Below are positions 4,561 to 56,123 of a stretch of DNA of 64,000 bases, piece by piece. Under the pieces are notes generated by a model that saw nothing but the letters and a program-made list of their open reading frames with translations, searched no databases and was not told the origin of the DNA. The stretch spans positions 310,001-374,000 of the forward strand of contig NW_021836291.1 of NCBI RefSeq assembly GCF_006345805.1, in the 5' to 3' direction. A program made the position numbers and the translations under genes. This stretch comes from Octopus sinensis (taxonomy: Eukaryota). Position 1 is the first letter of the stretch, and each line of letters begins with the position of its first letter.

Positions 4561-4839
4561 TACGAGCCCTGCCAAAAAATTTGATGTAAATTATAATTTG
4601 CTAATGTTGCAATTTATAATATCAAAAATAAAAATAATTCACATTATAATTTGCTAATGTTGTAAATAATTTTACTATTTTAAAGAAAACATGGTTCAAA
4701 TATAAAACATCATTTTTGCAAAAATTTAAAGTTCAATCATTAGTTCGGAACGTTTGCCTTTATTTTAATTGGCCTTTTGAATCGGTATATTAATTATCGA
4801 TTTTTTAACGGCTCGTAATCAACCGTATCTCATTACGTG

Positions 4840-7800: not shown

Positions 7801-7847
7801 TTGTTCGCGGCAATGCCTATTCGATTATGTCGTCAGCCGCGAATTAA
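4840..7847 (+). mobile_element. Near full-length CRE-like non-LTR retrotransposon: PHD finger + RT + CCHC + restriction-like endonuclease in one ORF
   Basis: C4HC3 PHD (CSSC..CSSC..HLSC..WDCRRC); RT motifs GGVRPIAVG, DISNAFNTL, GVQQGDPLGPLLF, WYLDD; HGCRCG..HPLSC; RHAALN..GKRPDG..WDSTC..KIAKY (RLE). One 1-nt deletion near 5410 and one in-frame TAG near 5538 split the ORF. An A-rich tail lies at about 7889-7899. Confidence 0.92.
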
Positions 7848-7994
7848 TTATATGCGCTTTTTACAGCTCGTCTAAAACCTTTTTGATTAAAAAAAAAAAT
7901 TTATTAGATTCGACCATAATGTCGATCCAGGGAATTTGACAATATTCATTAAAGGAATTTTGGCAAATTATACACTTCCATTTTGTATAAATAA

Positions 7995-8720
7995 TGTTTT
8001 TTGTATAAATTGTAGTTGGTTGTGGTTATAGACTCATTTTCTAAATTCGCAGTTGTAAAACTTGCCAGGCGGAAATCAGCGGAGAAAATTACTAGAAAAA
8101 GAATATTTTTTACATGACTGGTCCCCCATTTATTCTACAGACGGATAATGGGAAAGAATTTAAGAACAAATGTATGGAAACAATGTGTAATGATCTAAAA
8201 ATCATACATATAAGTGGACGCCCTAAAGCACCATGGATTCAGGGTCATGTAGAAAGGCAAGTTATTTGTAATTTATCTTTAGATTCAATCAATCGATCAA
8301 AAGGTCAACTAGTGCCTCAAATTGGTCTTTTGGAAGCTATAAAGACTTCTATCAAGAAATCGTTTATAAATATAACATGGCAAAGCATGAAACGACCAAG
8401 AGGACACCTTTCGAAATTTTTATGGGAGGAAATAATTTAATCCCGAGGGAAATAAGATCGGCTTTATTGTCATTCGATGGATATGAAGCGGTTGAATCAA
8501 ATCAATCGGAGATAATTGGATCCGATTATTTCGAAAACGAGGACGATTGTTTGAATCAACAAAGTGTGTATGAAAGCCATGTTTTCGCCGGAGAAAAAAT
8601 GAAAAGGAGGCGGAAATAGAAATTTAATGAAGATTTAGCCGTAGGAGATAATGTCCTACTGAGCCATGATATTGATGCAAATCCAAATAATCGAAAATAC
8701 CCCCTATACGATCTGTATAA
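7995..8720 (+). mobile_element. Gypsy-like DDE integrase with a spliceosomal micro-intron (Ginger-like DNA transposon or domesticated integrase), degraded
   Basis: VIDSFSKFAVV..GPPFILQTDNGKEFKN..SGRPKAPWIQGHVER, then after removing 8257-8282 (GC..AG) FNQSIKR..YNMAKHETTKRTPFEIFMG. These are typical rve motifs. Confidence 0.75.
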
Positions 8721-10667
8721 TTATTGGCAGTCACCCCGGAGTAGTGATAATTAAATCAGCCCACGATGCTATAAAACATGCAGCGCAAAAGGACCGATTA
8801 ACAGGAGGATTTTCCCAAAGTATATTTTAATAAATAATATCTTAGTTCACACAATATCTTTATTTGGAATTAGTTTAGTGGGATAACCCCACTACAATAA
8901 CTTCTGAAATTCATTTAGTGAAAATGTTGTACGACTCAAATTCTTTAAAACGTATTAACTTTTTTAATCTTGTAAACACAAATGGAGTTGAAAAAATCGA
9001 AGTTTTTTCAAACAATTCTGCGGGATTTTCGGGAGATGTGAGGCTAATACACGAATTAATGTATTATCAATATAAAATACACCCCGTGTTATTGACATCT
9101 GGAGACATTAAAAAAATACGAGAGACAAATCAATCAAGGTTGTGTGCTTCCTCTACAACAAGCATTTTTAGTGATTTTCGTGGATCACGATATAGCCAGA
9201 AAGTAAAGACGCCAAAAAAAGACAAATCAAAAACTTAATTTTTCTGGATGTCTGCTATTGATTGATTTTAGTTTTATTTGATTCTTTTTTGATTCCTCGT
9301 TATTTTTAATAGATTTCTTGTTAATAGATAAATCAGAATAAAGATAGAGTAAAAAAATTCAAAAAGATATAAAAAAATCATTATAAAAATGTCAAAATAA
9401 TAAGAGATTGACTTTTAAGGAATAAAATCAAAAAATGATGAAAATGATAAAATTTCAAATTCTGTAATCAGGAAATGAAAGTTCATAAAGATTTATTCCT
9501 TACAAATCAAATTAAATAAGAATGTAAAAAAGTACACATAAAATACCAACAAACTAAGTCAACTACATGTATCAACGTGTTATAATTTATTAGGCTTACC
9601 TTTAAAAATAGGTTAACCATTTGTGTAATGATTTTAATTTTAATAAATATGAATTTTATTTATATTTTCGAGAAGCTTCTCCTACCAATGTCAGTGAGAA
9701 ATTGAATCACGGCCTAGCCGACGATTCCTGAGGTCTCTATAAACTTGGAACTCTCTCTCTGGATTGTCAATTTTGTGAAGAACTATGCCTTTACTGACGA
9801 CCTGAGTATCAGATAAGTTTGACATTTTTTTAGTGAGGACAGAAGGAATGTGAATATTCTTCATGTCGATCAAGTTACTGTTTACTGAAATGTGCGATGA
9901 GACACCTTATTTGGCATTGGAAATTGACTTGATGTCCCCTTGGTAAATTCATTTGGGTCTTTCGTTGTTTCTGCGTTGAATCATTTATTGGATTGAGAAA
10001 AACTAAAAATCAATGTTTTAAAAAGAGGGAAGAAATATTTTTTTCAACTGTGTGGTTATGGAGGTTTGTTTTCAACTTGTTACAACAATACCCACTACCA
10101 CTGATATCCTGAATACATCAAAAAAATGTAAACCAAAAAATCAATCGCGTTTGTGTATTTAATTTAGAAAATCCTTTTTGTGGAGACAGTGTTGGGAATT
10201 GTCATTCGTGTTGACATATTCCTGCCATAATTCAGTTAAAGAAGATGTTTTTTCTATCGGATCTGTCAAAAAATATGTTTACCAGTACAAATCATTGTAT
10301 ATATTTTTAATAATCAATATTTTAGATTTCGCAAGAATAAAAATCGCTCTTTCAGGAATGCGCTATCTCTGGCACACAATTGTCTGGAGTTCGCCTCTTG
10401 GAAGAGCACAAGTACTGGAAGGAATTCAAATAGTAAGAAAGTATTTTTTAACTATTTAGTCTGGTCTATAACGAAAAAGGGCTGTCTTTAAGGGTTAGAA
10501 TTGAGAGAGTTGAAAGAATTGAGAGATTATTCAAAATTGAGTTGAAAATTGAGTCTTGAAAACAAAAAATTCTAGAAACCGAAACCTTTGATGCAAGGGT
10601 GTCAAACGAATTTTGTGCCTCTTTTTAAATAAATATTTTTCCTTTCTTTCCTTACAGTTAAAAGTTT

Positions 10668-14808: not shown

Positions 14809-16288
14809 ATGATGAGAATTGCAACGACTTTTCGCGTCCATTGGAAAAAATCAATATTCTTCAGCATTCTGGGCTGTTATTGTTGGTCATTGGCATCAAA
14901 CAAGCTCAAGTATTAATTATAAATATATTTCAGAGAACATCAACTAATAAAAATATATTGCAAGAGAGCTTGTGTATATTCCTTACAAATCACCCTTAGA
15001 CATACGGAGATGGCAATATTCCTTCAGAAGGTTTAAAGAAAGTCCTCGTTGTCCTTAATCCAGCAGCTCATCTTGGGTAGAATTTTATTTTATATTTTAG
15101 AGGGGCTAATAAACTATATGATAAATTTATATCACCAATCCTGGGCCTTTCTGGTCTTCTGGTCGACGTTGTGAGGACTGAAGGGGAGGGATATGCCAAA
15201 GACTACATGAGAGAACTTGATCTTGGAAAATTGGATTTCTTACTGGTGGTTGGAGGGGATGGGACTCTCCAAGAAGTAATTCCTCCTACCATCTCATTAG
15301 GTCATTACTGGGCTTATGAGAAGACCTGATCGAGTTTTTTTATCAAATTTTAAAATATAGACTACAGTTAGAGGACTTCCCATCGTAGTGGTTCCTGTGG
15401 GGATTAGAAACACTGTTTTTAACTATCTTCACTCCTCCCAGCCTCAAAAGAACCTGACAGAGTGGACTTTATATTTCTAATCATAGGACACTCTGCAGTG
15501 CTGTTATGACAATTTTTGAGGGGACTAATAAATTGACGAATGTCATCAAACTTGAGGTTATTTTTTCCAATATTTTAAGGGAAGTGATGGGGAACCAGTC
15601 TATGCTATCAAGTCAGTGTCAGTCGGTCTATTTGAAAGTCTTCTCTTAAAGCTGAATCCGTTTTTTTGTTAGTTTGAGGCAGTTAGAAATTCAATGTTTT
15701 TTGATGTTAAAAAAATGTGGACGATTTTGAAATTTGTTGTTTTGGGGAAACATCGGTCACCCTCGGCGAATTATTCACTTTCTTTGGAATATTCTAATCC
15801 CTGTGAAGGCTGTTCAATCTGTCAACCTGTTTCTGAGGTTCCTTCGACGTGGTGGAATGCTTTTTCTAAACAAAAAAGCATGTGGTTTGTTTTGACTATT
15901 TTAGTGCCATTTCGAGACAGTTGTAGACAGTTTGTTAACCAGCTTGGCTTGGAGTGTAGCAGACTTGATATTCAAGTCGAAAATGACAGGCTTGGTTTGA
16001 CTTTTAGTCCTAAATTGCCAACGTGGAGGGAGGTTGTTGATCGGGGGTTTTATTTTGTTTGGTTTATTGATAGGATGGGGAGAAATGGTGTGTCGGAGGG
16101 TATTTTGACGAATTCTCTGGATCTGTGTGTTGATGGAATTGTTTGATTGATTAAGATAATTGTCTTAGGACGAGGGTACTTCTTTTCAAATTGACGGGGA
16201 ATCGTTTCCAGCTCGTAATATAAGAATGACGCTTCTTAGAAATCAATTGACGTTTTTAACTAAAAATGACGAATCTTTTCATTTATAA
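14809..16288 (+). CDS. AGK: Acylglycerol kinase, mitochondrial (DAGK-cat family)
   Basis: At least 9 introns of 23-28 nt. Spliced product: MMRIATTFRVHWKKS..KKVLVVLNPAAHLG..VVGGDGTLQEVITGLMRR..EGSDGEPVYAI..SFQIDGESFPARNIRMTLLRNQLTF. Matches AGK (HWKK, LNPAA, GGDGTLQEV). One apparent 1-nt deletion in an A run near 15530. Confidence 0.88.
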
Positions 16289-16657
16289 ACATATCATTTG
16301 TCTCAGTCTTTCTTTGGTGTTTTTTGATGTGAATATTCTCCAATAACGCAACCCACATCGGTCAAAAAACTTGTTTTTAGACGGACCAAAAAAATTGCAT
16401 ATTCAATAATTTATAAAACTTTTTTGATTTTATCGTATCTCACAAAACCAAAATACCCTTTAACAGTTATTTTTAAATTTTAAATACAGTGACTCGCAAA
16501 TTGGCCACAATTTTTTAGATTTATTATTAATAATCTTCTGCTTAATAAAGACTATTTTGCGGGATTCGAAAATCAATTAAAAATTTTTAAAGCTACCCAC
16601 AAACCAAAATTTCCTACGTTGAAGAAAAATTGGTAGAATGTATGGATACAATAGAGT

Positions 16658-17159: not shown

Positions 17160-17960
17160 AAAGCTATTAATTGAAAATTAATTTCTAAACGGTTTTTTGA
17201 ATGATTCCTTAATATCGTGTAAGGTTGCGCATTTTGCCAAAGAGTTTCAACTTAATAATTTTAAATATTCTAAAGGATTTCTGGCAAAATTCAAAAGAGC
17301 CATAATTTTAGAATGCGAAAATTACAGACCATTGTCTTGCACATTGTATCTCTCAAAACTTGTATTGTATTAAAATTTTATTTTTTCATAAAAATTTTAC
17401 TGGATTACTACATCCAATAAATATTAGAATTATAAAAACATTTAAGACTCATTTCATGAAAAGAAAGCTACAGTACTTAACTGATTTGCTCGAAACTGAA
17501 AATGTTTCTGTATACAATTCAAAAAAATGACATTAAAAGATCCAATTTTGTTTGTCAGTATGGGTTGGGGTGACTTATCTACTGAAACCATGCAAAATTA
17601 TTTTAAGATTTTAAATCAATCTAATCACGCAAATTTAATAATTAAACACTATGATGCTGAAATTGAAGGAACTGATATTTTCAATCATTTAATGAATAAA
17701 GACTTTTTCGCTATCGAGTACAGAGAAGTTCAAAATATACACGAAATTTGTTTACAAGAGGATCAAGAGCCAGAAAGCAACGACGAAGATACAAAAATCA
17801 CATATCCACTTGATAGAAAAGACATTGCAAGAAGATCAACCGAAATAGAAAGGGAACTTTATTGTAATGCATAAAATGAAAATAATGTTGCTCTCATTAC
17901 TGCAATAAGAAAATATAAAGAAAACATAAAACGGGCAAATAAAAAAGAATGAGGGATTAA
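17160..17960 (+). mobile_element. pogo/Tigger-like transposase remnant
   Basis: FAKEFQLNNFKYSKGFLAKFKRAHNF (CENP-B HTH, FKAS.GWL..FK type) and TLKDPILFVSMGWGDLSTETMQNYF (Tigger C-terminal W....TI.N.F); the DDE core is deleted. Confidence 0.6.
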
Positions 17961-26615: not shown

Positions 26616-29600
26616 CCCTGGGGTACACTATTGGGCAATAAGCGTGATCTTGAACTCTCGTTCCCGACGCACACTTTCCCACGACGTCCGCTCAAAAAAT
26701 TCGCTATCCATAGCTTCATAGGTGTAGAAATTTTTGTACCAAATATCTTTTGAATTAGGATCTTTCTTGGGACGGAGTCAACGCTTTTTCAATGTCGATA
26801 GTGCATACAATCGATTTCTCCTGCAATTTCTTCTTTTGTGTCCCTTCATTTATGAAATCTGTTCGTGTGGTAAGGAAGGAGGTCGTTGACAATCCTTCCT
26901 TGAATCCATGTTGGAATGTAGATTGTGGGAGGAAAGGGCGAATATGTTTTAGGACCAGTTTTTCCAAGATTCTTGACAACACACATATAGGGATACTGGT
27001 CTATAGGAGCCGGGGTCGTTCTTCGGTCTTCCAGGTTTTAATATTGGCCGGATTTTTATAGTTTCCATAAGTTCGGTATAGAGTTCGTGATTAATGACGT
27101 GTTATAGATCGTGGTTAAAGCATTTAATGAAACAGGGCCCAAATGTTTTTAGTAGAATAAGTGGAATTCCATCCGGTCCACATGAGTTTGTTTTCTTCTG
27201 ATTCGAGATTGTTTCAGACACCTCTTCAGAAGAAAATAAGTCGTTGGGGGCTTTTGGATGGCTTTGATTTTAATCTTGACTGTGAGTTCATTTTTATAGG
27301 AATATGACTAATCTTGACACAGTGTTTCATAAAATTGTTTAGATTGAGCTGGTATGTTTCTGTTTTACGCTCGTCAGGATTCTTCAAGCGTCTCAACATC
27401 GTCCCCATGGTCGAAATAGAGGCTTGTTTATTCATAGCTCTTGAGATTCGGCTGAGCTTCTTCCTTTGGACTTGGTTGGTATTATTCGTAATAAGCATGT
27501 TTAGAGCCCTGATTCGATCGATGATTCCTTTGGGTCGATACTTTCTTTTCTTGAGGCTGATTCTTTCTCTAATTAGTTTTTTCGTTCTTGAATCATATTT
27601 TGAGCTCCCACTTCTTATACATGCTCTTCTGATAATCAAATTCCTTGCATCTATGATAGTTTTGTTGAAGCTTTCCACTACTCTGTCCAAGGAAGAAAAA
27701 TTCTCAGGGTGGAAATTCTGGAGTCTTGAATCGACGTAATTTACGAAAGCATTCCAATCTGCGTTTTCGTAATCATAGAGATAAGTTTGTTTCAGTATGG
27801 GATGTGGAGAACAGTTCATTCTCATTATCATTGAGTGGTGGTCACTTCGGAGATCATAGCGGACCGACCACTTGATGATAGGGGAAAGCCGAGGCGAGCA
27901 GATTGATAGATCTGGCGATGTCTTCGTGTCCTTAGAGTTGTAGGGTGTCCGAGTGTTCTTTTTCGGGTTGTTAAGGATTATTAACTTCTGCAATTGCGAT
28001 ACCAAAAAGTTTCCTCTGGCATCGGCAGTCTGATATCGGAACCAAGCGGGATGCTTCGCGTTCAGGTCTCCGCATAAAAGTAAGTTATCCAATTTACCAA
28101 GGCTTGACAGGTCAAAACGATAACCCTTCTTGCATGAACCTGGGGGAGGTACGTAGTCATTTGCGATTTCAAGTCTTCCGTAGGAGGTCATAAGTGGGAT
28201 TCCAATTATTTTGGTGTTGGAGTCCTTCCTTAAGCTTATATACGGTAAGGGATTCTCAAAATATTTTATTCCTCTTTTTATAAGGGTCAGTAGACCCCCT
28301 CCATGCTCAGACTTGCGGTCACATCGTAGTGCATCATATCCAGGGTTGTTAGATTTAAATCATTTGATTTTAATCAACAATAAAAATCAATGATTTAAAT
28401 CATTAAAAAAAATCAAAAAAAATCATTTAAATTTTTTTAAATGTCTGGAAGAAAGCGTGATTCTTTGTGGGCTTATTTTGATAAACGTATTATTCCTGGA
28501 AAGACCGGAAGCCGTGCCAGATGTCGTAATTGTGGGAAGGACATACAAGGTCTTGTATCTCGGATGAGGCAGCATCATTTATTATGTCGAAGTAATATTG
28601 ATATCCCTGAAAAATGCCGAGACCTGAAAGCGAATTTCCTCCAAGGATGAAGGACCATTCATTAATCAATTTCGTAACTACGACGACTTCATCTAAGAAA
28701 GATTTGATGGATCTGCAACTCGCTAGATACATATTTTCTACAAACACTCCGTTTGCTGCTGTAGAACATCCCGAATTTGTCAAATTCGTCCAAATGCTTC
28801 TTCCTGGGTATCGTTTACCCTCTCGTCATCAAATTGGTGGTACATTACTTGATCATGTGTACGACCAAATACATGAAGACTGTCGACAAAGACTCCAGGA
28901 CAAAACAGTGTCTATGATGTTGGACGGGTGGAGCAACATTCATAATGAACCCGTTATTTGTGTCTCGGTTGTGACATCAGATGGGGAAAATTATCTCATT
29001 GACACTGTGGACACTTCTGGATATAGCCACACTGCGGAATATCTTCAATCTGTTGCTTTAGCCTCCGCACAATTGGCTGAACAACGGTTTGGATGTAAAA
29101 TCGGCAGTCTTGTAACGGATAATGCTGCCAACATGACTAAAATGAGACGGATAATGATGGAAGATGGCAATGAAATAATTACTTATGGTTGCTCGGCACA
29201 TTATCTCAACCTTCTTGTGAAGGATGTCGAGTAGCGGACGTTAAGGAACTATTGTAACAATCAATAAATATTTCCGAAACGTCCATCTTCCAGCTGCATG
29301 GTACAAATCTAATGGAGGAAAAAAACTCGTTCTTCCGATTGATGTACGGTGGAACACTTTATCAGACTGTTTTCAATCTTATCTGGATAATTGGTCTATT
29401 ATTTTGAGAACTTGTGAGGAACACAGAACGGATATTGATACAGAGATTTTTTCCAAGGTCCAAAATATTTCCCTAAAACGACGCGTTGAAGAATATCTGA
29501 TGCTTATTAAACCAATTGCTGTCGCTTTAGATAAAATTCAGAATGATTCTACCACGATTAGTCATGCTGTAGAAATTTGGAAAGAACTTGAACAGACATA

Positions 29601-30620
29601 TATTGACAATGGATGTACGAATATTTTAGGAAAAGTGAGAATTCGAGCAAAACAAGCATTAACACCTTTCCACTTACTTGCGAATTTGATCGACCCGACA
29701 TGTAGTGGGAAATCTCTTTCAAATGTTGAGATTGACATTGCATTGAGTTATTGTGCTCAAAATTATGAATATGCACTTCCGACTCTGATTAATTTCAGAG
29801 CAAAAGCTGATCCATTTAAACAATACATGTTTGCTCCGAATTTATTGAGTAAAGTATCACCTATAGCTTGGTGGGAGTCGAATTCATACCAGTTACCTTC
29901 ACAAGTAATTTCACTATGCAAAAAAATTCTTGGAGCAGTTGCTTCGACAGGTGGAATAGAAAGAATCTTTTCAACATTCGGATTTCTACATTCAAATGTA
30001 CGCAATAGGCTGGGGATCGAAAAAGCAGCCAAACTTGTTTCCATTTACAAGCTTTTAAATAAATAAAAACGATTTCCATTGTTTTTTATTTTAGTTCGCT
30101 TTGAAATATTTTTTTATTTATTAACCCGAAGACCACAAAGAAAGAAAGCGTAATGCAAACTAGTTAAGTGATCCCGGTGGACATAAGGAACTACGATAGA
30201 TCGTTCTGCGTGGCCGTTTTTCAGTGTTTATGTACAAAGAGAGAGGTTCTCTGATAAGCCAGGTGGAAAGGGTCGTTTTGAAATAAAGATCATTTAATTC
30301 AAAAAAATCTGATTTAAATCAAAAAAATCGTGATTAAATCAAAAAAATCAGATTTTTTGATTTTTTTTGAAAAAATCATGATTTTTAAACAACCCTGATC
30401 ATATCCAGCAAAAAGAGGAGTGATCCCGAATTCTCCCCAGATTTGTTTCTAGCGATACAACTGTTCTTCTTGAATGCCGAGGTATCCGTCTGCAGAGAAA
30501 TTCAACTGGGGTGTTTTTTATGACAAATTCGAATTCTTCTGTTTTGATCAACCTTCCTCTGAATTGATTTTCTGGCTTCTTGCAGAAATTAAGAATACCC
30601 CGCCCGTCATTTAAAGCCGT
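26616..30620 (-). mobile_element. I/Jockey-like LINE ORF2 (APE + partial RT), interrupted by the hAT at 28341-30397
   Basis: APE motifs LLCGDLNAKHPAW, SPDLSI and LRSDH; RT motifs QHGFK, DIEKA and SVPQG. Excising the hAT plus one TSD restores PLFAGYDALRCDRKSEHGGGLLTLIKRGI. APE start NQFRGRLIKTEEF lies at about 30570. Confidence 0.88.
28341..30397 (+). mobile_element. Full-length hAT DNA transposon (BED finger + DDE + dimerisation domain) with 8-bp TSD
   Basis: TIR cagggttgtt..aacaaccctg; TSD atcatatc at 28333-28340 and 30398-30405. Transposase 28441-30066: SLWAYF..ARCRNC..MRQHHLLC, MLDGWSN, LVTDNAANM, CSAH, DVRWNT, ERIFS. Three 1-nt frameshifts. Confidence 0.95.
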
Positions 30621-39244: not shown

Positions 39245-41221
39245 TTAATAAAGTGACAGGTTATTAAATAGTAAAATTGCTTCAATTCTGAATACTCCCT
39301 CTTCGTTGGTCACATAATAAGGATGATATGTTCTCTCAATAAATATCCAAGAATTGCCTTCCTTTTTCCAAATAATATAGTAATCCACATTGCATATGTC
39401 TTGAAAGACTAGGAGATAACCACCCTTTTCCAATAAATCCATGCGGAATGAAACATCCTGAGTAGACCGATCGTAGCAAAGAGGAGATTCGCCATTCTTA
39501 AATACCTGACTTGATTAAACCATATCCAATTACTGCAAGACGCGACAGCAAAAACGTCGAGATGCCTCCTTTTTCAGCAATCGTTGGATTGAACAGAATG
39601 GAGACCAATTGAGGATATCCTTCCGATGTACGAGCTACAAAAATCCTACTAATAAGTACTAAATCTACTTTCTAGTCCAGAAACGATCAATTAATGCATC
39701 CTCATGGACATCTACACTCACAAATTGGCCTGTCGTCGTCTTGACTTGAAGTTGTATGTCGTGAGGGAATGTCACGTCGTGCCAATACTGAAATATAATT
39801 CTAATCTCAGAGGACTCGCAGGATATAGAAAGAATGTCCCTGACATAACAACTGACTGACTGTACTTGCAAATCGGCTCATCGGAAAAGGGAACTTGGAA
39901 GCTCAAACAACCTCCACCCAACCAGCCTGCCTTGTCGGAATATGTGACAGATACAACATTCAAATTATCCCCAGCAATCGTTCGACAACTATTCAACTGC
40001 AGTTCCTGAAGACCAATGTCGTACCAACAAGTATCCCCCACTTTCTAAAATTACTAGCACATGACACTTGTCCAAAATAGAAAGTACATGAACCCACTCC
40101 CCGACAGAAAGTGGTATCAAATGGCAGTCTGTATTCCCTATGCTCGACCAAGTCCCCCAATGATTCCCAAAAACTGAGAATATAAAAAGTGCCATACAGT
40201 GCCTCTATGTCATAATAAATGTTCTCATTCCCAAAATTTTCCCATGTCCAGCCCGGGGCGAAGAGTGCTACGTTCAGCTCATTTCGGATCACCATTTTTA
40301 CAGCCAAATATATAAAAGACTCAATAAACCTCAAATATATCAAATCCGGCACCCCCAACTCGACTATCACGACCAAACACGTCAATTCCTACAAATATTC
40401 TGTCAACAAAATCCGCATAGTTTTTTGTCATTGAGGTCATGTGCTTCTCTTCCCACCAGTAATTAGTAAACATATAAGCTCCAGTGTCCCTTATGAATAT
40501 TCTGGAATTGAAATTGATAAATCAGGACTCGTTGTGGCGATTGAGTTCATTCTGCCATAAAAGTTGTCCTCCAACCACAATGGAGTCATACCACACCACA
40601 ATTGGATTTTCTACCACTGCCCTCAGTCGTGTATTAAGCAATTTAAGCATTTGAACAATCCGTGATATGTGGGAAGGCTGAGTAGTTACAATTTGATTAC
40701 CAATATGTTATTCTCAATGTTAATGAGCCATCCACTTAGGCCAAACTCCTCTGCAATGGCCACCAATTGGTCAACAATTGACTCCACTATTTCCTCATCT
40801 GAGAACATGAAGGAACAAAAGGCAGTCCCCCAGTCTCCTTCTGTGATTACTGTCCCTACACAATGTCCCTCAGGGATCACCTAATATAGGGACACCGTTC
40901 TTATAAGCACATTTGCTCCAGGAAAGAGGAGGAATTGTAACAAAATGATGACTGAAGTACACGAATACGTCCACCAGATACCAGTTAAAGAAAGAATAGC
41001 CACTCCTTCCAGCGCCAAAATAAAATCTGGTCTAATTATAGTCATTGGAACTTGTCGTCGAGGTATCCGCCATTCATATCATGACAGAATAACACTTTTC
41101 CTTTCTTTTTTGATTTCCAGTTTGAGAATTGAAGTTTGCTGAATAATTTGGTGGAAGTGGATTTCCAGTTTAACAGTTCCTGGACTGATTTAAGAGGATT
41201 AGTTTGGAAATCACAGGTCAT
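39245..41221 (-). CDS. ENGASE: Cytosolic endo-beta-N-acetylglucosaminidase (GH85)
   Basis: About 10 introns of 23-28 nt. Motifs VLFCHDMNGGYLDDK, DVFVYFSHHFVTIPP, GTVITE, GWLINIEN, VWYDS..LLWQNELN, FTNYWW, FVGIDVFGR, VALFAPGW, PFDTTFCRGVG. One intron (40305-40329) ends in TG. Confidence 0.9.
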
Positions 41222-42790: not shown

Positions 42791-43561
42791 ATTCTAAGAA
42801 CATAACATTATCTGACGATTCACTGCAAAAAAAGCAGGCAGACTGTTGATCATCTAGCCACGCGGTTTGGTAGGATGCTAAACAGTGATTATTTCCGAAG
42901 ACACAACGAAGTGGTAAAGTGTATTCATCTCCACTAGTGTCGAATGTATGGAAATAAACGAAACAGGAAATTGAAAGGACATTCGGTTGTGTCAATAATC
43001 TCAACCCAAAATGTTGAAATCAGAGTTGACACGTCAATTATGACTGAAACGAAAGTTCAATTCAATAAACCTGATATTTTCGTTTATGACAAGAGGAAAA
43101 GAGAAATTCATTTAATCGAAGTGGGAGTTACCTCGCAAGACCGTTTAAAGCAAGTTGAAGTGGATAAATTTCACAAATACGACCTCCCTGCAAACGAACT
43201 GTCGGTTCTCTATTAAGCAAAAGTGAAGATTATTCCAATTGTCTTGACATGGGATGGAGTTGTCTCAAAGTTCTTAAAAAGTCATATGGACAAGTTATCC
43301 ATTGAAGAAGGAACGAGGACATACATCCAGTCCGTTTTGCTGAAGAGGACACTAGAGAGTATGCTTATCGAGCACAGACATGTGATAAAGGTAGACAACG
43401 AGGAGTACGCCTCTGCCGCCAATCAACTTGCGGAGCTGGCATGTCGTGAGGACACTCAGCTAAACAATTACTTTGACGCAGAAATGAAAAATGATGAGAA
43501 TTTTGTTGCAAACTCTTCTTCCAAGCAAAGAAGAAAAATCACTGACGATCTGAATTCTTAA
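42790..43561 (+). mobile_element. R4/NeSL-like LINE 3' end (RLE domain)
   Basis: RRHNEVVKCIH; NKPDIFVYDKRKREIHLIEVGVTSQD..DKFHKYD..L; KIIPIVLTWDG. Confidence 0.88.
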
Positions 43562-44859
43562 ATAATTTAAGATAGAATTTACATAATTAGTTCAACATAC
43601 TTATTAGAGGCTTCCAACCTAATATCTTTAAATTTCCTCTTCCATTTGGGCAATATACGCTTTTGAGTTGGAAACAAGATGAGCCTTTCCTCCAGGTTTT
43701 ACAGCTTTTAATACATCTCTCATGAAAGAAGTCTGAATAAGTCAATGTTTAGCATGGCAATCCAAGGGTCAGAAAACTCCGCATAAACTGTTTCCACAGT
43801 ATTTTCAGCAAGATATTCGCGTGTAAAAACTTGGGTTTCCCCACAAACAATGAACCAGTTTTTAATTTTAGTCCTTTTCGAATGAATTTTATGAGCTCTC
43901 TGAAACTTGAGCTTTACATCAACCCAATTTATTCCGGGATTTTCTTCAGCCTTATTTAGAATCCACTCTTTGTTTCCACTGCAGTACTCAATACGCACGG
44001 GTTTTTCATTTCTAAAAAGTTTTGTCTACGAAAGAAAGGAGAGTTCAGCATAATCGGGATAGTTGGTCGGTAAATAGAAGATTTGGATACACCCAATGTG
44101 CCTCTTTTTAACACTCCTATTTACCTTAGTTCTGTTTTTCCTCTCTGCAGAAGAGCTGATTAATTTCAGACATGTTTTTCATAATGCTCCCCTGATTTAT
44201 ATGATCCTATTTTTTTCTCAATAAGTAGTGTGATGATCTTTATCTACGCTTTTCTCTTTTCACGACTAAAGCAGCTCATGCCTCATAATTACTATAAAAT
44301 TTTTGCCAAAGCCATTTTGAATCGAAATAATTTTTCAGCGCTCGAGCTCTGTGAAACAAAGCTCACAGTGTTTAATCAGATGATCGAGGCAGGAATTTGG
44401 TCATCAAACAATGGTTGAAGTTATAAAAGAGCTGGCCGAGAGCAAACAACATCTCTTTGGCAAAAAGTTTATATTCTAAACAATATAGCAATTGTTGGAC
44501 TTCTAAGAACAGTTTCAAAGATGTTTTATGCATTTTCTGTTCTCAACCGCTTTTTAAAAAGCATTAATAGTTTTTTTGATTGACTAGGTATCTCAGTTAG
44601 CACAACTCTTGCCAGTTTAATTGTTGCCATTTTATCAATGATTTTTTGTAATGTTTTGCATTGTGGCATCTTGGTTCTAATAATAATAATCAATGATTTT
44701 TTGTACCTTACTGAAACATCGACTGACAAAGTCGTTAAAAGCAGTCTAAAAAGAAGTCCTATTGTATGTATAGAGGTTAATGCATAAGACTTGTACCTGA
44801 AGTTTTTTTGGAAGTCAGAAAATTGAAATTTTCGAGCGATATGCCAGAACTGATACGAG

Positions 44860-45653: not shown

Positions 45654-47615
45654 ATGTTTGTAAAATTCTTTAAGTTTAATAAATATTATTTATTTGACTT
45701 AATTTTTGTTTTTGTGATGTTAGCTGTGACCTTATTTGTGTTTTCCATCTCTTCGCTCCTTCCTGAAGAGGATATACATATAAAAATAACTTTGAAAGAA
45801 CCAAAAAACACCCTTAAAGCTGAAAAGGATTACAAAATTGGTTGGTTTGAGACATTTGTAAGCCCACATACTTTTACATGTCAGGTTGATCACTACAATT
45901 TCAACAACAACGACAAATTCGAAATAAAATATTTATATTCTGACCAATTCTACACCAAGGACGGGCCAGTTTTCTTCTATGCGGGCAACGAGGGGACAGT
46001 CGAAGGATTTGCTGAAAATTCGGTTCACATAAACCTGATTAATTTCAGGGCTTTATTTGGGAGATTGCCTCCTTATTTGGGGCCTATGTCCTGTTTGGAG
46101 AACATAGATATTATGGAGAGTCGATTCCCTACAAGAATGGACAAAATAACATTTCATTTGAATATTTGACTGCTGAACAAGCCATGTTGGACTACGTCAG
46201 TTTAATTGACTATTTATTTCCTCCCAAAACAAAAGTTATTGTATTTGGGGGCTCCTATGGGGGCATGTTGGCGGCTTGGATGAGAATGAAGTACCCTGCT
46301 TACATCACCGGGTTAGTATCCGCAGTTAATCACCTATTTGGTTGGGTGAACATGTCTATAGTCGTAGCACAGGTGACACAATTACGCTCTGGCTGTGCTT
46401 AACTGGCATTCTTTGGTTAGGTGAGCATTAACCTGTTTGTTAATGTTGGAGACATATCCTGGTTAAGTAACACATTTTGCATTCTTTCTTTGATTGGGTG
46501 ACCATTTCTGGTTCACTTAGCCTAGTTAAGTGTATATCACACTATAGTTTTGGTTAGCTAAGCGGCAGTCTTTCTTTGGTTAGGTGAGTGTTAACTAGCT
46601 AGCTAAGATAGGTTACGTAGTTTGGTTAAGCTTCAGTTTTTCCTTGTTTGGTGACTACTAATTGACTAGTGCTCTCGCATCGTCTGCGCCAATATTAATG
46701 TTTGAGGGGTACTCAGATTGTGGGTCCCCCTTTGTGACAATAACCAAGAATTTCCGAACAGAAGGACCCAATTCACCTGAGAACATTAAAACACTGTGGA
46801 ACATACTAAATGACCATAAAAATGGTTTATTTTATATATAAATGATTACTAGACACGAAATATTTGGATTGGTTGTGGAATGAATTAAATTTATGCAACC
46901 AGAATGAGAGAAATATCGAACTGCTCATTCAAAATATCACTAATCTATTTTTTGCCGCATCCATGGTGAACTACCCATCCCCCTCGACACTCTTGGTCCC
47001 CCTCCCTGCCTACCCACTCCGCGTAACCCCCCGATCTCACTGCCAGGCCATTTCCCAATACTTTAACGGGAAGGGAATGTCCGAAGAGGAGTTAGTCCGA
47101 GCACTGGCACTGTCCCTCAACCTGTACTTCAACAACACGGGCACTCGAGTCCTCTGCTTTGATTTTACCGACACTTATGGCTCAGTAGACTTGCTCCCCT
47201 GGGGGTACCAGGTGGTCATGTGTGAATAATATGACAGAGCTGTACTGAGATGGATCTTTATATGTGTTCGAGGGAGGGTGTGGACAATATGTTCCCCCCA
47301 ATGGAGTACAACAGTAGTAGGGTCAATAAGGAGTGCAGTGAGTTGTATGGAGTGACTCCACGACGGGGGTTTATCCCATTGGAGACGAATGTGCGTGATT
47401 TGTCTTCATTTACTAACATCATCTTCAGTAATGGAGACATGGATCCGTGGAGTGGAGGGGGTTTCTATCGACAGGACAATGAGGGAATTCACGTGGTCGT
47501 CATCGAAGGGGGGGCCCACCACGTTGACTTGAGGGAGTCCTCTGATAACGATCCCCCGTCTGTTGTGTTGGCCAGAAGACGTGAGATTGAGATCATACAG
47601 GGTTGGCTTAATTAA
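45654..47615 (+). CDS. PRCP: Lysosomal Pro-X carboxypeptidase (peptidase S28)
   Basis: N-terminal hydrophobic segment; VDHYNF, FFYAGNEG, EHRYYGES, LTAEQAMLDY, VFGGSYGGMLAAWMRMKYP, ALASSAPI, YQSCTEM, NIIFSNGDMDPWSGGG, GAHHVDLR. Five introns of 24-28 nt plus one of 358 nt (46312-46669). Confidence 0.93.
46312..46669. repeat. Degenerate about 70-90-bp-period repeat filling PRCP intron 3; same motif at about 47630-47720
   Basis: Recurrent core ttctttggttRggtga (e.g. tttggttgggtga, tttggttaggtga x2, tttgattgggtga, ttgtttggtga); ttttctttggttgggtgaccatt also occurs just after the PRCP stop. Confidence 0.7.
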
Positions 47616-48239
47616 TAATTTAATTAATTAACATTGGTTAAGCGGCACAGATCGCAGTTTTTCTTTGGTTGGGTGACCATTACCTCACTATTTAGGCGAG
47701 GTATTTGTTAGATTAGTTACCCTTATTTGTGCATTCTTGCATGCCTTAGTTGTTCTACTGGTGTGGTGGTACACACATTTTACTAAGCAAAGAGTTTAGA
47801 GCATAATTTAATCAGAAAGTCTGCAATGTCAATCCCAAATTACGCAAGAAAACCACAGGGGTGAGTAGAGTATCATCCAGACGAACAAATTCATCATTCT
47901 CCGACTTGCGGGTGATAAATCGACTTTATTGCACACCACAAAAAAAGAAAGGCGACTCAGTCCCTTCTTTGCACGCCTTATCAGCTTAAAATTATTCGAA
48001 GAAATTAAGACACTTGTTGCTATTTCACCAACATGTATTCTAATTGATTTTAAAAAGGGTTTGATTAACTCCACAAAATTAGTCTTTTTATCATCGAGTG
48101 TATTTGGCTGTAATTTCCATTTCGGTCAAATCATATGACGGAAAATACAATGTCTTTGTCTTCTCGGAGTTTACAAGGATGTCTCATCGTGGGCACGAAA
48201 ACTATTGAGGAAATGCTACCATTAAGTTTTCATCCCTAT

Positions 48240-48879: not shown

Positions 48880-50800
48880 GAGTTTTTGAATTATTTCAGA
48901 AATAAATTTATTGCAGGTGATGTCACTCCCGGCCCATTTTATGACATTAGTTTTTGGAGTTGTTTTCATCGGGTATTAAAGTGAATGCACATGACAACCA
49001 ATTCATTGGAATATTGGCATAAAGTGTTGAACAGTTCATTTAACAGAGATTTGGCAGCTTTTGTTAATGTGTTAGTTAAGAAGAACAGAATATTTGTAAA
49101 AATGGGACAAATTAAGTCAGGAAGGTACAGTGGGCCCAAAAAGTCATGGCACCACTTAATAAATTTTAGTATTTTACGTTTTTACCCATAAAATATGAAG
49201 TATTTTGACTTTTAATTATTTTTTTGAAAAATTCAAGATTCTGATTTAGAAAATAATTTTAAATCCTTAAAATATTAATAATTGACAAAGAAAAAACAAC
49301 TTTTTTTAATTTTTAGCGTTATTGAAGGGTCAAAAAGTGTTGGGACTTTTATATCTACAGTTTTAGTTTAAGTGCATATGATAAGAGAATGTCATTCTTT
49401 CAGATTATTTCTTTTAAGTTTTTCTTCACAAAAGCTTTGTTATTACTTAATAACGCATTATTAATATTGATATTACGAAAACAGCCGTTTTTAGCACTAC
49501 TTTATGGGAAATCGGAAGGAATATTCTTTTGAGCTAAAACAGATGATCGTCAAGTCCCACCAAGAAAAAAAAAGTTACAACCAAATTTCCAGACAATTCA
49601 ATATTCCGAAAAGTTCAGTAAGGAATATAATAGTCCGTTGAAAAGAACAAAAAAATGTTTGCAATAAATCGAGGTCTGGTGCACCTAAAAAGATATCGAG
49701 CCGTTCTCATTCAATGAAAAAAAGGAGTGTGGCAAATGATCCCAGAATTATTAGAAGCAAGCTGGTAGATGATTTAGAGACCGTGGGAATCAAAGTTGAG
49801 TTATCTACGATAACTAATACATTGCGCAAACAAGGAATTCATAAAAGGAGGGCACGACATATTCCTCTACTAAGAAAAGTCCATATATCAGCGCGACTAA
49901 AATTCGCTCAGAATTTTTTAAATAAAGATTTAGAATATATAATGAACATATTATGGTCAGATGAAACCAAAATTGAACTTTTTGGCCTCAGGTAAAAAAA
50001 TCAAGAATATGACAAAAAATGTACCATACCTACAGTTAAGCACGGAGGAGGCAGCCTAGTGTTATGGGCGTGTTTTTCGTCTCAAGGAGTGGGTGAACTA
50101 TTTTTCATAGATGGAATATTGAATGCCAAGATGTACGTCGAAATTTTGGAAAATTGTTTAGTTCCGTCCATCAATAAATTAAAGCAAAGAAGCAATTGGA
50201 CGTTTCAACACGACAACGATCCCAAACATAAAGCTAAAATAACTACTGAATGGCTTAATAATAATAGAATAAATGTTCTGAAATGGCCTAGTCAATCTCC
50301 TGACTTAAACCCAATTGAAAATTTATGGAAAACGTTGAAAATAAAGATAGGAAACCGAAGACCTAGAAATATAGTGGAGTTAAAAGCATTCTGTCGTGAG
50401 GAGTGGAATAAAATTTCCAAAAAAGAATGTTTTAAATTAATAAATACATACAAAAGAAGATTAGAAGCAGTAATTGTTGCAAAAGGGCATGCAACAAAAT
50501 ATTAATAAGGCATCGTGCCAACACTTATTGACCCTTAAATAACGCTAAAAATTAAAAAAAATGTTTTTTCTTTGTCAATTATCGCTAATTTTAAAGATTT
50601 AAAATTATTTTCTAAATCAGAATCTTTTGAATTTTTCAAAAAAAATAATTAAAAGTCAAAATAATTCATATTTTATAGGTAAAAACGTAAAATACTAAAA
50701 TTTATTAAGTGGTACCATGACTTTTTGGGCCCACTGTATCTTAAAGTGTTAGCAACAGATTGCAAAAAACCTTGAACTGACAATAGCATTTGAAAATTTT
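48880..50800 (+). mobile_element. MULE-like transposase C-terminal remnant, interrupted by Tc1
   Basis: NYFRNKFI..FWSCFHRV..TTNSLEYWHKVLNS (W..Y.R....TNN..E.WH..LN pattern). The frame continues GR|YLKV across the Tc1 TA site. Confidence 0.6.
49128..50736 (+). mobile_element. Tc1 (DD34E) DNA transposon with about 220-bp IR/DR-type TIRs and TA TSD
   Basis: TA|cagtgggcccaaaaagtcatgg..ccatgactttttgggcccactg|TA. Transposase 49504-50505 has WSDE, KHGGG, QHDNDPKH and SPDLNPIENLW with 34 residues between D and E. It carries in-frame TGA and TAA stops and a short deletion near 49990. Confidence 0.95.
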
Positions 50801-51799: not shown

Positions 51800-52405
51800 A
51801 TAGTTTGATTTTTAAAGACGCAGAAATTTCTTTACCTCTCAACCATACGTTGTTTAATCTTTTAAACGACCAAAACCTTCAAAGGAATACATAACCCGCA
51901 TATAGATTACCTTTTTCATCTACAAAAGAATCTACGTATCAAATACATAAACACCCACAACCAAGTGAAAGCAGCTGAGTTCAAAATCCAAAGAAACAAA
52001 ATCAAGAAAAAATGTTCGAAAAATCACGAAAAAGAGTTACAAAACTTTGAAAATAAATTAAGAAAGTACAAACACGAAGCACAAATGTATGCATCTGTAA
52101 AGATGCTAGCGCGAAAAAAGAAATCTGAAAACCTAACAGTTCATGATGAACTCAGAAGAACCATTTACAACAATCAGAAACGCACAGACACTACCCGACC
52201 ACTTTGAAAAATATTTCAATTTTGAAAATGAAGAAACACTTTATCCTTTCGATGGAGCGCTCAGAAAGCTATTACAAGAAATACTTTAACGTAAGTTAAA
52301 AAATCTGTGACCAGACTAAACAAGTCAAAAGCTCCAAATCCAGATAATGTTAATTCAGAGCTCATCAGATATGCCCCTGAAGAGCTTCAAAAACTCATTA
52401 CTTAC
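51800..52405 (+). mobile_element. RTE-like ORF fragment between APE and RT
   Basis: EAQMYASVKML..; KAPNPDNVNSELIRYAPEEL (K.PGPD.I..ELL motif). Confidence 0.6.
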
Positions 52406-52675
52406 ATGGAGGTATCCACTTTAATGCACACATTTGAGTTCTCACACACCGATTGAACTCGACAAGTTCGCAACTTTCTGGACCGCCTCAAAGCATACTT
52501 ATTGCAGAGCAGAAAATGGTGGCACCTCACCACCTCGTTGTGTCTCCATGTGTAATCATGGTACAGCATATTTCCGCACTTAGTAGCTAAATATTTAACG
52601 GTCATCGCCTTATTTTTACAGTGGTTACACTGTTTCCGTTGACCATTAAAAAAATTTCTATCCTGCAAATATAGA
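52405..52675 (-). mobile_element. R4/NeSL-like LINE CCHC/RLE fragment
   Basis: QCNHCKNKAMTVKYLATKCGNMLYHDYTWRHNEVVRC. Confidence 0.8.
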
Positions 52676-52679
52676 ATAA

Positions 52680-52925
52680 CCTTCACTCCCATCGCCGTCG
52701 AGACTTCCGGCGTCATCGGCGAAAAGTCTCTTCCCTTTCTAAAAAAGCTTGGCCGCATGATCTCCCATAAACGGGGAGACCCACGCGAGTCCAAGTGGCT
52801 TTTCGAAAGGATTTCCTTGGCCATAGTACGTGGAAACTGTGTTTCCATTTACGAGGCCGGAAATTTAGTTAGTTAATAACTATTTGTTAATTACATATAA
52901 CTTTTTCATTAAAAAAAAAAAAAAG
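52680..52925 (+). mobile_element. CRE-like 3' fragment with poly-A tail
   Basis: FTPIAVETSGVIGEKSLPFLKKLG..ESKWLFERISLAIVRGN; A14 at about 52911-52924. Confidence 0.85.
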
Positions 52926-53039
52926 AATAACCTTTCTCCTCAAGGAGAGTTATTCCCATTCTTCAGACACATTGATGATGACCATACGGGATTCAATTAT
53001 TAAATAAATCCACCTCAATTAGTTAAAATCAAATTAATG

Positions 53040-53706
53040 TTAATTATTTCCTGGTTTTTGGTTATACGTTCCAATATCACGTCTTTTATGGATTTGAGGT
53101 GTGGAGGGAGTATTATAATGACCACTCATCAAGCCAGGGGTATTTTCGGCCTCCTTCAGCTGCTGCTCTGTGAAATTTCGAGTATTTTTGCGCGATTCTT
53201 TGGGACCAAATCCTTTATTGACTGCATGAGCCTGAAACATAATTTATTTGGACCGACTTTTCTCCCAATGGTTTCTATGGTATTCAAAACACTGCAAAGT
53301 CCTTGTTGCTCGAAGACATCTACAATTTGAAATTGTTCGCCAGTTGTCAGATTAAATGGACTTTTTCCAAGTTCTTTGAACGCTTGGTTGTAGTTCTCCC
53401 CTGCAGCAAAAATCGTGTTTCCCTTTTTTATAGATAATTGTTTGCCTGAAAGAACTTGGGTCAATCAATTAGAATATTTCATGGATTACAAACCGTATTA
53501 AAACTGTCCCATCTTTGAGCACTGAAGCAAAGTTATCCATGTCTCCTTCAGTAGAGAATTGACCGTCTATTAAATTCTTGATCCATTCGAGGAGTTCGTG
53601 GGCTTTTTTACAGTTGAATTTTTGTTTTTCCTAAATTTTTGTTTTATAGATTTACTTTCTCAAAAGATTCGCGAGTTAATCCTGATTTTTCCGATCTATC
53701 TGACAT
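53040..53706 (-). CDS. Transgelin/myophilin (Mp20)-type calponin-homology protein
   Basis: MSDRSEKSGLTRESFEK|..ELLEWI..FASVLKDGTVLIR|LTQVL..FQIVDVFEQQGLCSVLNTIETIGRK|..GPKESRKNTRNFTEQQLKEAE..GL (CH domain + calponin repeat). Introns 53631-53655, 53466-53493 (GT..TG) and a 26-nt third intron. Confidence 0.85.
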
Positions 53707-54551
53707 TACGAATTAATTTTCTATTCGGATATTATAATATATTATAATTTTTATGCTAATTAATTTTCTTCGAAAATATAACGTTTTAAGACTCAAAAAA
53801 AGAAGGACGCTCCTAGGATGCAAGAAGACTCTTTTTTCAGCCTGGACAACCACTACATTGACGTATCGTCATCAACGTGGCTAACGTATGTGAATAACTC
53901 TCCCCAATCAGAAGGATTTATTTTTACCTTCTCAGAAGTTGACAGAGACAAAGAAGATGAAGAAGAATGACACAAGGTTTGTGGAGTGTCATCCTTTGTT
54001 TATTCCGAAAATTCAGTTAGGCAAAAATTAGCTAATTAGTTTCTTTTTATTAATTATGACTGCAGTTGGGTTGTTACTGCCTGATATCTCAATTTGACTT
54101 AAGTATTTGTCCAAGGTTAGAAGGTCTATCATTCTGAATGAACAACGACAGAATGCCTCGACACTTGTCCTTTAACGATGTCTCTTAAAGGTTTCTCTCT
54201 TTCCCATCAACAACAAGATCGAATAAATACATTTCCTTTCCGTGGAGGCAGGTCTTTTATATGGGATCTTAAATACCCCGACATTTTCGCAAAATCCCTC
54301 CCGGAGACGACTGCTGGACATTTTTATTTATTTTAAGCAATTTATGTAATAAATTACTTAATTTGAAAGTCTTATTAAAAACATTGATGAGATTTGAATT
54401 AGTAATAAAAATGTATATTAGGAGAATTCCCAGACTATTTCTATTATGATTGACATACATAGTTGGATGAGCACACGTAGGACAAAATTGAGAATGTTTT
54501 AAAGTAGTCTTTAATTCAAATGTAAAACATATCTGTGGTTTTTACCACATA

Positions 54552-56123
54552 CAGTCAAATCCCTTTAAATCGACTATTCGCTATACCGGAATTCCTTTGA
54601 AACCGGACTAAACTTCTGGTCCCGATTCATCAATAGACTATCATTGCTAATTAATCTTCGATATATCGGATCCCTTCTATTCAGAATACCGGCCGTATTT
54701 GTGGTCCCAACATGAATTTTCTTTTATCGTAAACTGGCCTTCTGACATCAATCTTTGATCTAATCCTATTAATTGTCTATAATTCCTAAAAATGATATAT
54801 TGCAAAGAGTTGGCTTTGAAACCAATGGGGTTATTGGCCGAAAAGCTCTTAAACTCCTCTCAGAGATTTGTCTAATCATCTCGAGGAGTCATGACAGTCG
54901 CTAAACTAGCTGGCTTCTTCAACGAATATTGCTCGCGATATTACGTGAAAATTGCGTGTCCATTCGCTCAGCGACTAATCCAAATTATACTTTTCTCTTT
55001 TTCATGCATTATCTAAAAAAATGATAGGCCCGCAAAGAAAACGATCATCTTAAAGAACAAATTCCAAATAATAAATGAATCAAATCAAACACCTAAGCCG
55101 ACACATTTTTTTCAAGGACCGTTATTCAGTCTGCGTCATGTACTGCCTTCGCCTCTCACCGTGCCAAGGAAACCAAACGGAGGAAGTACGCGTCCATTCC
55201 TGACGCATACAATTTCGTCCTAATTGCAGTGAAGACAAGTGGTTTGATTGGGCCGGCTGGGAAGAGGATTCTGTCTATAATTGGGAAACTGATCGGAAAG
55301 AAAACCTTTGACCACCAGGAAACCAGCTGGCTGTACCAGATAATATCTATAGCAATCTCGCAGGTAACTCGCTTCTATTCCCGGTGCAGTCAATGGCGAA
55401 TCCTAATTGTTTTACCTTCCCTTAACTTTCTTTTATATTTTTGAATGTCTTCATTATTTTATTGTTATCGATCAATGTAACACCCATTCCTTTCAATAAT
55501 AGACATATATCGCTGATTTTCACATTTTATTGGAATGTTTTGTTCGAATGTGATTAGGTAACCAAAAAGACTTGATTGCTTTGTTTGACAATACTATTCA
55601 CAATATCAAACAAAATGGTTTCTGGATTGTTCACTAAAAGATACAAACACAAATTTAAGAAAGTTTTGATTGTATCAACGAATTCTACGGTTAAAACTCA
55701 TGTATCAAATTTTTGTCACGTGTATAAAGATAGGTTTGACGTTTAAAAATAATGTTAAAATTTTAAAATCACAAAGATTGGGAATCATCCTTAGTTGAGC
55801 AATACCAAATAGTATCAGCTTTTGAAGATGACTCAGAGTCTAATAAGCAAACAGAGCCAAAACATATAGAAAAATAAACACACACAAATGTTCAACAAAT
55901 GCTCGACTAAATCTGTCACTTTGCCTGCACTTAAAACCCTGCGTTACTCGATCCTGAACAACTATCTAAACAAAAAGCAATTGCGGAATCAAAGCTAAAT
56001 ACAAGGTAATCCTTATTAACATATTATCATCAATTTTACAGTTTCACTTATTTGTTATAAATAAATTTAATAACTTGTTCGATATACCGGACAATTCTGT
56101 CGGTCCCTAAAAGAGCTTGACTG
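54552..56123. mobile_element. pogo/Tigger-like degraded element (termini only)
   Basis: TA|cagtcaaa.. and ..ttgactg|TA, with a tataccgga..ggtccc motif near both ends; the TIR match is only about 7 nt. Confidence 0.4.
54810..55440 (+). mobile_element. Two tandem CRE-like 3' fragments (about 54810-55030 and 55100-55440)
   Basis: FETNGVIGRKALKLL..SWLLQRILLAILREN and KRRKY..FVLIAVKTSGLIG..ETSWLYQIISIAI. Confidence 0.75.

Follow-up and report, generated by a model that had tools for sequence, protein, structure and literature searches.

A candidate GT-TG micro-intron of 28 nucleotides in a transgelin-like gene from a contig of probable dicyemid origin

No signal of U2-type splicing is as invariant as the AG dinucleotide at the 3' end, and a TG serves vertebrates only as a minor alternative beside an AG. 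U12-type introns have their acceptor set mainly by its distance from the branch point, and termini other than AG are tolerated. TG 3' splice sites are functional in U2-type introns of 36 human genes, where they carry a pyrimidine at -3 and a purine at +1; an AG lies within 28 nt, the TG is never the sole acceptor, and human AG>TG mutations activate neighbouring AGs, not the TG (Szafranski et al. 2007, PMC2374985). The other system of immediate relevance is the ultra-short introns of dicyemids (Ogino 2010; Lu 2019, PMC6736024; Zverkov 2019, PMC6543705; PMC13644364), whose median length is 27 bp (PMC6543705); among animals, introns this short have been reported only from dicyemids and from myxobolid myxozoans (PMC13644364). 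Dicyema japonicum, with a GC content of 36.7%, was collected from O. sinensis (PMC6736024), and its splice signals have shrunk to "GTa" and "AG" (PMC13644364). The intron hints used for this species were TopHat spliced alignments, and the published splice logos were built from gene models (PMC6736024, PMC13644364). The 3' end of the introns in these dicyemid accounts is AG only, and a TG terminus is undescribed there.

The window, i.e. the whole stretch of 64,000 nt analysed here, corresponds to positions 310001-374000 of contig VCDQ01001777.1 in the "Octopus sinensis" assembly GCA_006345805.1. The contig has a GC content of ~37% and introns of 23-28 nt; judged by GC content, intron size and host, it is almost certainly a dicyemid contaminant of the octopus assembly. 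Two NCBI models that bear the name of the octopus are mis-modelled parasite genes: "lysosomal Pro-X carboxypeptidase-like [Octopus sinensis]" (P0009) is the S28 serine carboxypeptidase gene at 45654-47616, a neighbour of the transgelin-like gene discussed below, and comes from a locus (L002) that is 100% identical to the window over 34841-57615, while "glutaredoxin-3-like" (P0001) is a fusion of GLRX3 with the final exon of a transgelin-like pseudogene.

The transgelin-like gene occupies 53706-53040 on the minus strand and comprises four exons, with a predicted transgelin/calponin-like product of 195 aa. Exon 1 (53656-53706, MSDRSEKSGLTRESFEK) provides the ATG, and its N-terminus matches MADRPTKHGLAKEAYDK of the rotifer Rotaria; exon 2 (53494-53630, EKQKFNCKKAHELLEWIKNLIDGQFSTEGDMDNFASVLKDGTVLIR) is placed by the gene model and by the Pfam CH domain (E=7.6e-8); exon 3 (53258-53465, LTQVLSGKQLSIKKGNTIFAAGENYNQ...TIGRK) aligns with KLVNQFKEGSVKKIN... 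of homologs and with PDB 1WYM; and exon 4 (53040-53231, AHAVNKGFGPKESRKN...KPGNN), which ends in TAA, is 94% identical to the last exon of the Gnomon model P0001. Intron 1 (53631-53655, 25 nt) and intron 3 (53232-53257, 26 nt) are both GT-AG and in phase 0, and both match introns of Rotaria in position and phase (DK/VQ and GRK/AQ, with the slash marking the junction). Intron 2 (53466-53493, gtttgtaatccatgaaatattctaattg), 28 nt in length and in phase 2, runs from GT to TG in the context ATA CG/gtttg...aattg/A TTG. The product is 38-42% identical, over 85-90% of the length, to homologs of 187-189 aa from rotifers, insects and other sources; its residues 27-133 match the CH domain PF00307 at a modest 33 bits (E=7.6e-8), and it matches PDB 1WYM (transgelin-2) with E=1.5e-5. 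The calponin repeat PF00402, present in homologs P0002-P0008, was not detected by Pfam in the product. Apart from the TG acceptor the gene is intact, with an ATG, three introns at conserved positions, a stop codon, and neither internal stops nor frameshifts. For the transgelin-like protein, as for the S28 protein that served as control, a search of the protein database found no transcript-derived dicyemid relatives; its matches from this source were limited to Gnomon models of the same assembly.

The 28-nt segment, read on the minus strand from 53493 to 53466, has the donor gtttgt (53493-53488) at its 5' end and TG (53467-53466) at its 3' end, with ctaat at 53472-53468; it is 25% GC, shows T at -3 and -6, is followed by A at +1, and contains no AG. 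Retention in the frame of exon 2 leads into TAA at 53471-53469, and the frame of exon 3 is shut by a TGA (53467-53465) that spans the acceptor. Since the open frames of the two exons never overlap, a single indel cannot join them; the minimum to be removed is TAATTGA, and repair of the junction by a frameshift or indel was rejected as impossible because TAA and TGA leave no overlapping open window. Excision of exactly 28 nt yields LKDGTVLIR/LTQVLSGKQLSIKK, which aligns without gaps to LKDGTVLCKLVNQFKEGSVKKI of the homologous 187-189 aa transgelins and to PDB 1WYM; the predicted mRNA joins ...TTAATACG to ATTGACCC.... The boundary can be shifted by 1 nt, in that GG..TT would give an identical mRNA, and the donor is standard only in the GT..TG version; under the local base composition, a GT falls on any one given position with a chance of ~6%. 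Three claims of the initial annotation, which had been made from the letters and reading frames, are borne out by these observations: the GT-TG segment with CTAAT just upstream of the TG, the need for its removal if LKDGTVLIR/LTQVL is to be encoded, and the TAA encountered upon retention.

The nearest downstream AGs, at 53456-53455 (+11) and 53447-53446 (+20), would define introns of 39 and 48 nt and shift the frame. For the acceptors that end at 53455 and 53446, the frame is kept solely by the GT at 53563, which gives introns of 109 and 118 nt and costs the LKDG core of the CH domain, just as had been claimed for these two AGs. The accompanying statement that there was no canonical escape has to be withdrawn: a GT-AG intron of 67 nt (53489-53423, minus strand) stays in frame, reading ...VLIRF/GNTIF... 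and losing LTQVLSGKQLSIKK with its 14 conserved residues, and it is the shortest of a series that continues with in-frame variants of 82, 100 and 106 nt, which delete LTQVLSGKQLSIKK or more. If the true intron were the canonical one of 67 nt, or a longer one, the protein would lack at least 14 residues of the CH domain, and LTQVLSGKQLSIKK would be a recent relic; the standard GT and AG termini and the preserved frame speak for this, as does the mean intron length of 38 bp in D. japonicum (PMC6736024), according to which introns above 30 nt exist. Yet such an intron would drop residues that align gaplessly to KLVNQFKEGSVKKI in all homologs and would move the donor away from the position conserved in Rotaria; its length lies outside the span of 23-39 nt that holds 31 of the 32 curated introns described below, and its acceptor, ataaaaaag, has an A at -3, as found in 1 of 29 canonical introns. 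Isoforms were also scored with hidden Markov models built from 40 sequences, the transgelin-like profile itself comprising 7 homologs. The TG isoform, with 137.9 bits, ranks above all other in-frame isoforms; the best canonical alternative, that of 67 nt, reaches 124.1 bits, 13.8 bits lower, and the 109-nt isoform 87.6 bits. We regard a canonical intron at this junction as quite improbable. Many AT-AC introns keep the frame by chance, the sequence being AT-rich; none has U12 signals, and they were dismissed.

Compared with the described systems, the segment takes up a position of its own. It begins with GT, as required of a U2-type intron (GT or GC), lacks the AG at the 3' end, and has its position and phase in common with an orthologous intron of Rotaria sordida. 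With the published dicyemid introns it shares a length within 23-28 nt, AT-richness, a minimal 5' signal, conserved positions, the host O. sinensis and a GC content of ~37%, and it agrees with the local form of a dicyemid micro-intron (~20-30 nt, AT-rich, pyrimidine at -3); its TG terminus is what sets it apart from them. With the vertebrate TG-AG tandems, such as those of GNAS and TSPYL2, it has in common the GT donor, the TG end, the absence of U12 signals, a pyrimidine at -3, a purine at +1 and an AG no more than 28 nt away, the TG and the AGs at +11 and +20 (53446-53456, minus strand) forming such a tandem (Szafranski et al. 2007, PMC2374985). In human tandems, found in ~36 genes, the TG is an alternative to an AG that is used, whereas here the nearby AGs are out of frame and the TG junction, whose use we infer, is the sole one that encodes the conserved protein, in an intron of 28 nt and in about 2 of 32 local introns. 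U12-type introns differ by their /RTATCCTT donor and TCCTTAAC branch box; in the 28-nt segment the donor reads gtttgtaa and no TCCTTAAC-like box is present. On sequence grounds the segment would resemble a micro-intron of the U2 type whose acceptor is a TG-AG tandem, one that breaks the AG rule and is not a standard GT-AG intron.

Comparison with the orthologous intron in related species had been named as a check by the initial annotation. In Rotaria sordida, like the present animal a spiralian (locus L003, protein P0006), this intron reads TGC CA/gtatgt...tttttag/A TTA (LCQ/LMN); it lies at the same codon and in the same phase 2 as the 28-nt segment (LIR/LTQ), and it ends in AG, i.e. it is canonical GT-AG.

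A second transgelin-like copy, the sole related genomic one, is found in VCDQ01000438.1 (locus L001), where positions 15979-16609 correspond to 53728-52918 of the window. Both loci have only a block of 2.7 kb in common (52017-54682 of the window), which includes a LINE-like fragment at 52017-52681, and their flanks are unrelated. The copy has suffered a clean deletion of 180 nt (window ~53552-53373, with ACT microhomology) that takes out intron 2 and its surroundings, a TGC>TGA change in exon 3 (window 53294), and a change of the stop codon from TAA to TGA; it would be a dead paralog or the copy of a second species. As the region of intron 2 is deleted, this copy is silent on the ancestral acceptor. 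Differences between the two copies amount to 7 of 439 positions in exons (1.6%), 4 of 51 in introns (~8%) and ~11.5% in the flanks. With exons far less diverged than introns and flanks, the transgelin-like gene was evidently under constraint for most of the time since the copies separated, and the pattern indicates purifying selection over the long term.

To place the TG junction in its local context, 32 introns were curated by hand in host genes supported by homology, 28 of them in the window (transgelin-like, 3; S28 peptidase, 5; ENGase, 7; bZIP, 2; COX6B, 2; DAGK-like, 5; kinase-like, 4) and 4 in GLRX3 of the second locus. Automated intron finding, based on a self-trained codon-usage score and ORF pairing, had proved too noisy and was replaced by this procedure. 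Of the long ORFs, about half are remnants of transposons in which frameshifts occur naturally. Such remnants, with stops or frameshifts in long ORFs, lie at 4819-9235 and 28611-30063 on the plus strand and at 38389-34214 and 27229-28359 on the minus strand, and further ones with in-frame stops or frameshifts at 49642-50502, 51866-52453 and 42938-43558 on the plus strand. They include two elements with PHD finger and reverse transcriptase (one of them with an integrase-like piece), a LINE endonuclease, LINE-like fragments, a hAT transposase and a Tc1/mariner transposase, and in scans based on ORFs they imitate "non-canonical introns". What Pfam had matched as a "topoisomerase I" gene (42938-43558) was discarded, the match being weak and the ORF retroelement-like and interrupted by an in-frame stop.

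Thirty of the 32 curated introns are GT-AG; the median length is 26 nt and the range 23-39 nt, plus a single intron of 358 nt. The latter (46312-46669, plus strand) sits in the S28 gene among introns of 26-28 nt and is filled with tttggttaggtga-like repeats; the same motif recurs just past the 3' end of the gene (~47650-47690), and the long intron may be a small inserted repeat element. The 29 canonical micro-introns all start with GT, 27 of them have a pyrimidine at -3, and 18 have T at -6. In 11 of the 29, a TG precedes the frame-required AG by 3-8 nt, so that TG is not generally preferred; this pattern is compatible with a TG being accepted solely where the permitted distance range offers no AG. 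Both GT-TG introns are without an AG in that range, the next AGs leading to introns of 39 nt in the transgelin-like gene and 52 nt in the second case, described below. The rate of GT-TG introns, 2 of 28 among those curated in the window and 2 of 32 once GLRX3 is included, agrees with the original assertion, put as 2 of about 50, that it would be far above typical values. No frameshift correction was needed in ~6 kb of curated coding sequence of the contig. A further GT-TG candidate of 26 nt (17504-17529, plus strand) is probably spurious, given that its TG lies within an ATG (17528) able to start the downstream ORF; neither ORF had a Pfam match, and there was no homology support for it. In a Methyltransf_4-like gene (44025-43631), whose only obvious junction lacks a GT nearby, a 26-nt GC-AG intron (gccatgctaaacattgacttattcag, 43733-43758, minus strand) seems to be needed.

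The second GT-TG micro-intron resides in an ENGase/GH85 gene ~13 kb from the first. It measures 25 nt, is in phase 0 and occupies 40305-40329 on the minus strand (gtttattgagtcttttatatatttg, TTT GAG/gtttat...atttg/GCT GTA). Without these 25 nt the product reads GGAGFDIFE/AVKMVIRNELNVALFAPGW and aligns gaplessly with 11 ENGases of animals and plants (alignment A2), save for an additional residue upstream, at GRDSR; a canonical intron of Patella vulgata agrees with the GT-TG intron in position and phase (AGA GAG/gtataa...tttcag/GCA TTA). The TG isoform scored 422.3 bits, an in-frame GC-AG alternative of 31 nt (40350-40320) 418.9 bits, and GT-AG alternatives of 40 and 52 nt 405.7 and 400.3 bits. 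With the GC-AG alternative just 3.4 bits lower, ENGase is the weaker of the two TG cases, and the transgelin-like gene, with its 13.8 bits, the stronger one, as originally maintained. A 9-nt direct repeat, ATATATTTG, closes both the upstream exon (there followed by AG) and the intron. The same gene contains a 24-nt in-frame GT-AG intron without a stop codon (40174-40197, minus strand), invisible to ORF analysis and betrayed only by a gap of 9 columns against the homologs together with an intron of Patella at the same place.

The reading that competes most directly takes the TG for a lesion or an error and supposes that the intron is not productively removed, whether through a splice-null AG>TG allele on the assembled haplotype, through early decay of the gene, or through a wrong consensus base at 53467. 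In the version with decay, the gene would belong to a lineage that has lost many genes. Under this reading as a whole, transcripts would either keep the intron or be spliced at the +11 and +20 AGs, with a shifted frame. Reverting one A>T change indeed gives ...ctaatag/A, and splice-site null alleles share with the segment the same single-base state at -2; in human genes a site with such an AG>TG mutation is no longer used (PMC2374985). The dead copy, with its 180-nt deletion and TGC>TGA change, illustrates that in this genome members of the family can fall into decay, the transgelin-like gene has neither a transcript match in the protein database nor an NCBI Gnomon model, and its product shows a weak CH-domain match and lacks the calponin repeat. 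Against this stand the intact remainder of the gene and the far lower divergence of exons than of introns and flanks between the two copies; unlike in a null allele, the host gene is otherwise intact and conserved, and ENGase, an intact gene 13 kb away, has the same A>T state at -2. Two hits at -2 among 32 acceptors would be very unlikely to arise by error or decay, given the ~6 kb of coding sequence free of corrections, and decay would more often take the form of a frameshift or nonsense change, a single acceptor base being a far smaller target. On balance, we consider a lesion or error unlikely, at a level that still deserves serious attention. Loss of an "a" from "ttag" during assembly would fit as well, the junction being independent of intron length, and was judged unlikely because it takes two hits at the same base whereas indels are absent from the ~6 kb of curated coding sequence.

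Extrachromosomal circular DNA whose formation is regulated in development has been reported from dicyemids. Removal of the 28 nt by a process other than splicing, be it somatic programmed DNA elimination, IES-like excision or translational bypassing, may be considered in this context, all the more so as numerous contigs in Zverkov et al. (PMC6543705) are described as "circular" and the last bases of exon and intron resemble each other (TTTTAATACG and TTCTAATTG), an echo weaker than the repeat in ENGase. The segment nevertheless starts with GT and lies exactly at the position and in the phase of an ancestral intron, and its size and composition fit the local intron class; there are no TA boundaries, no terminal inverted repeats, and no matched take-off and landing codons are visible. 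Such a process would be a most improbable explanation.

The position and phase shared with Rotaria, the typical form of a micro-intron and the second case in ENGase argue for the 28 nt being an intron. The micro-intron reading of the initial annotation stands as far as position and phase, length and context are concerned, and falls short in its denial of a canonical escape. We hold, with slightly better than even confidence, that the segment is a genuine ancestral spliceosomal intron that is productively spliced at its TG acceptor. It can be rationalized as an ancestral U2-type micro-intron whose 3'-terminal dinucleotide changed from AG to TG and which the spliceosome would still remove at that TG, joining ATA CG to A TTG and restoring the full CH-domain protein. 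The likely mechanism is that introns of 23-28 nt have their acceptor chosen chiefly for its spacing from the 5' splice site and the branch point; with no AG in the distance range, the second catalytic step would accept a YTG that has T at -3 and a purine at +1. Early recognition may be aided by the AGs at +11 and +20, as proposed for the human TG-AG tandems; used in place of the TG, these AGs would lead to a frameshifted, unproductive mRNA. A wider proposal, offered tentatively and with less than even confidence, is that the dicyemid spliceosome has relaxed its 3' specificity, sets the acceptors of its 23-28 nt introns mainly by a distance ruler, and, in a few percent of ~30,000 introns, has YTG for a constitutive acceptor and no other.

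If TG is indeed used, these introns would mark how far acceptor specificity can relax when introns shrink to the physical minimum, with a bearing on how the site of the second step is selected. Independently of this, parasite genes with faulty models occur among the contigs and RefSeq-style proteins of "Octopus sinensis". A TG class would be absent from annotations that admitted canonical junctions only, and gene models of dicyemids, and perhaps of further micro-intron lineages like the myxozoans, would miss or break genes where they were built with such junctions alone.
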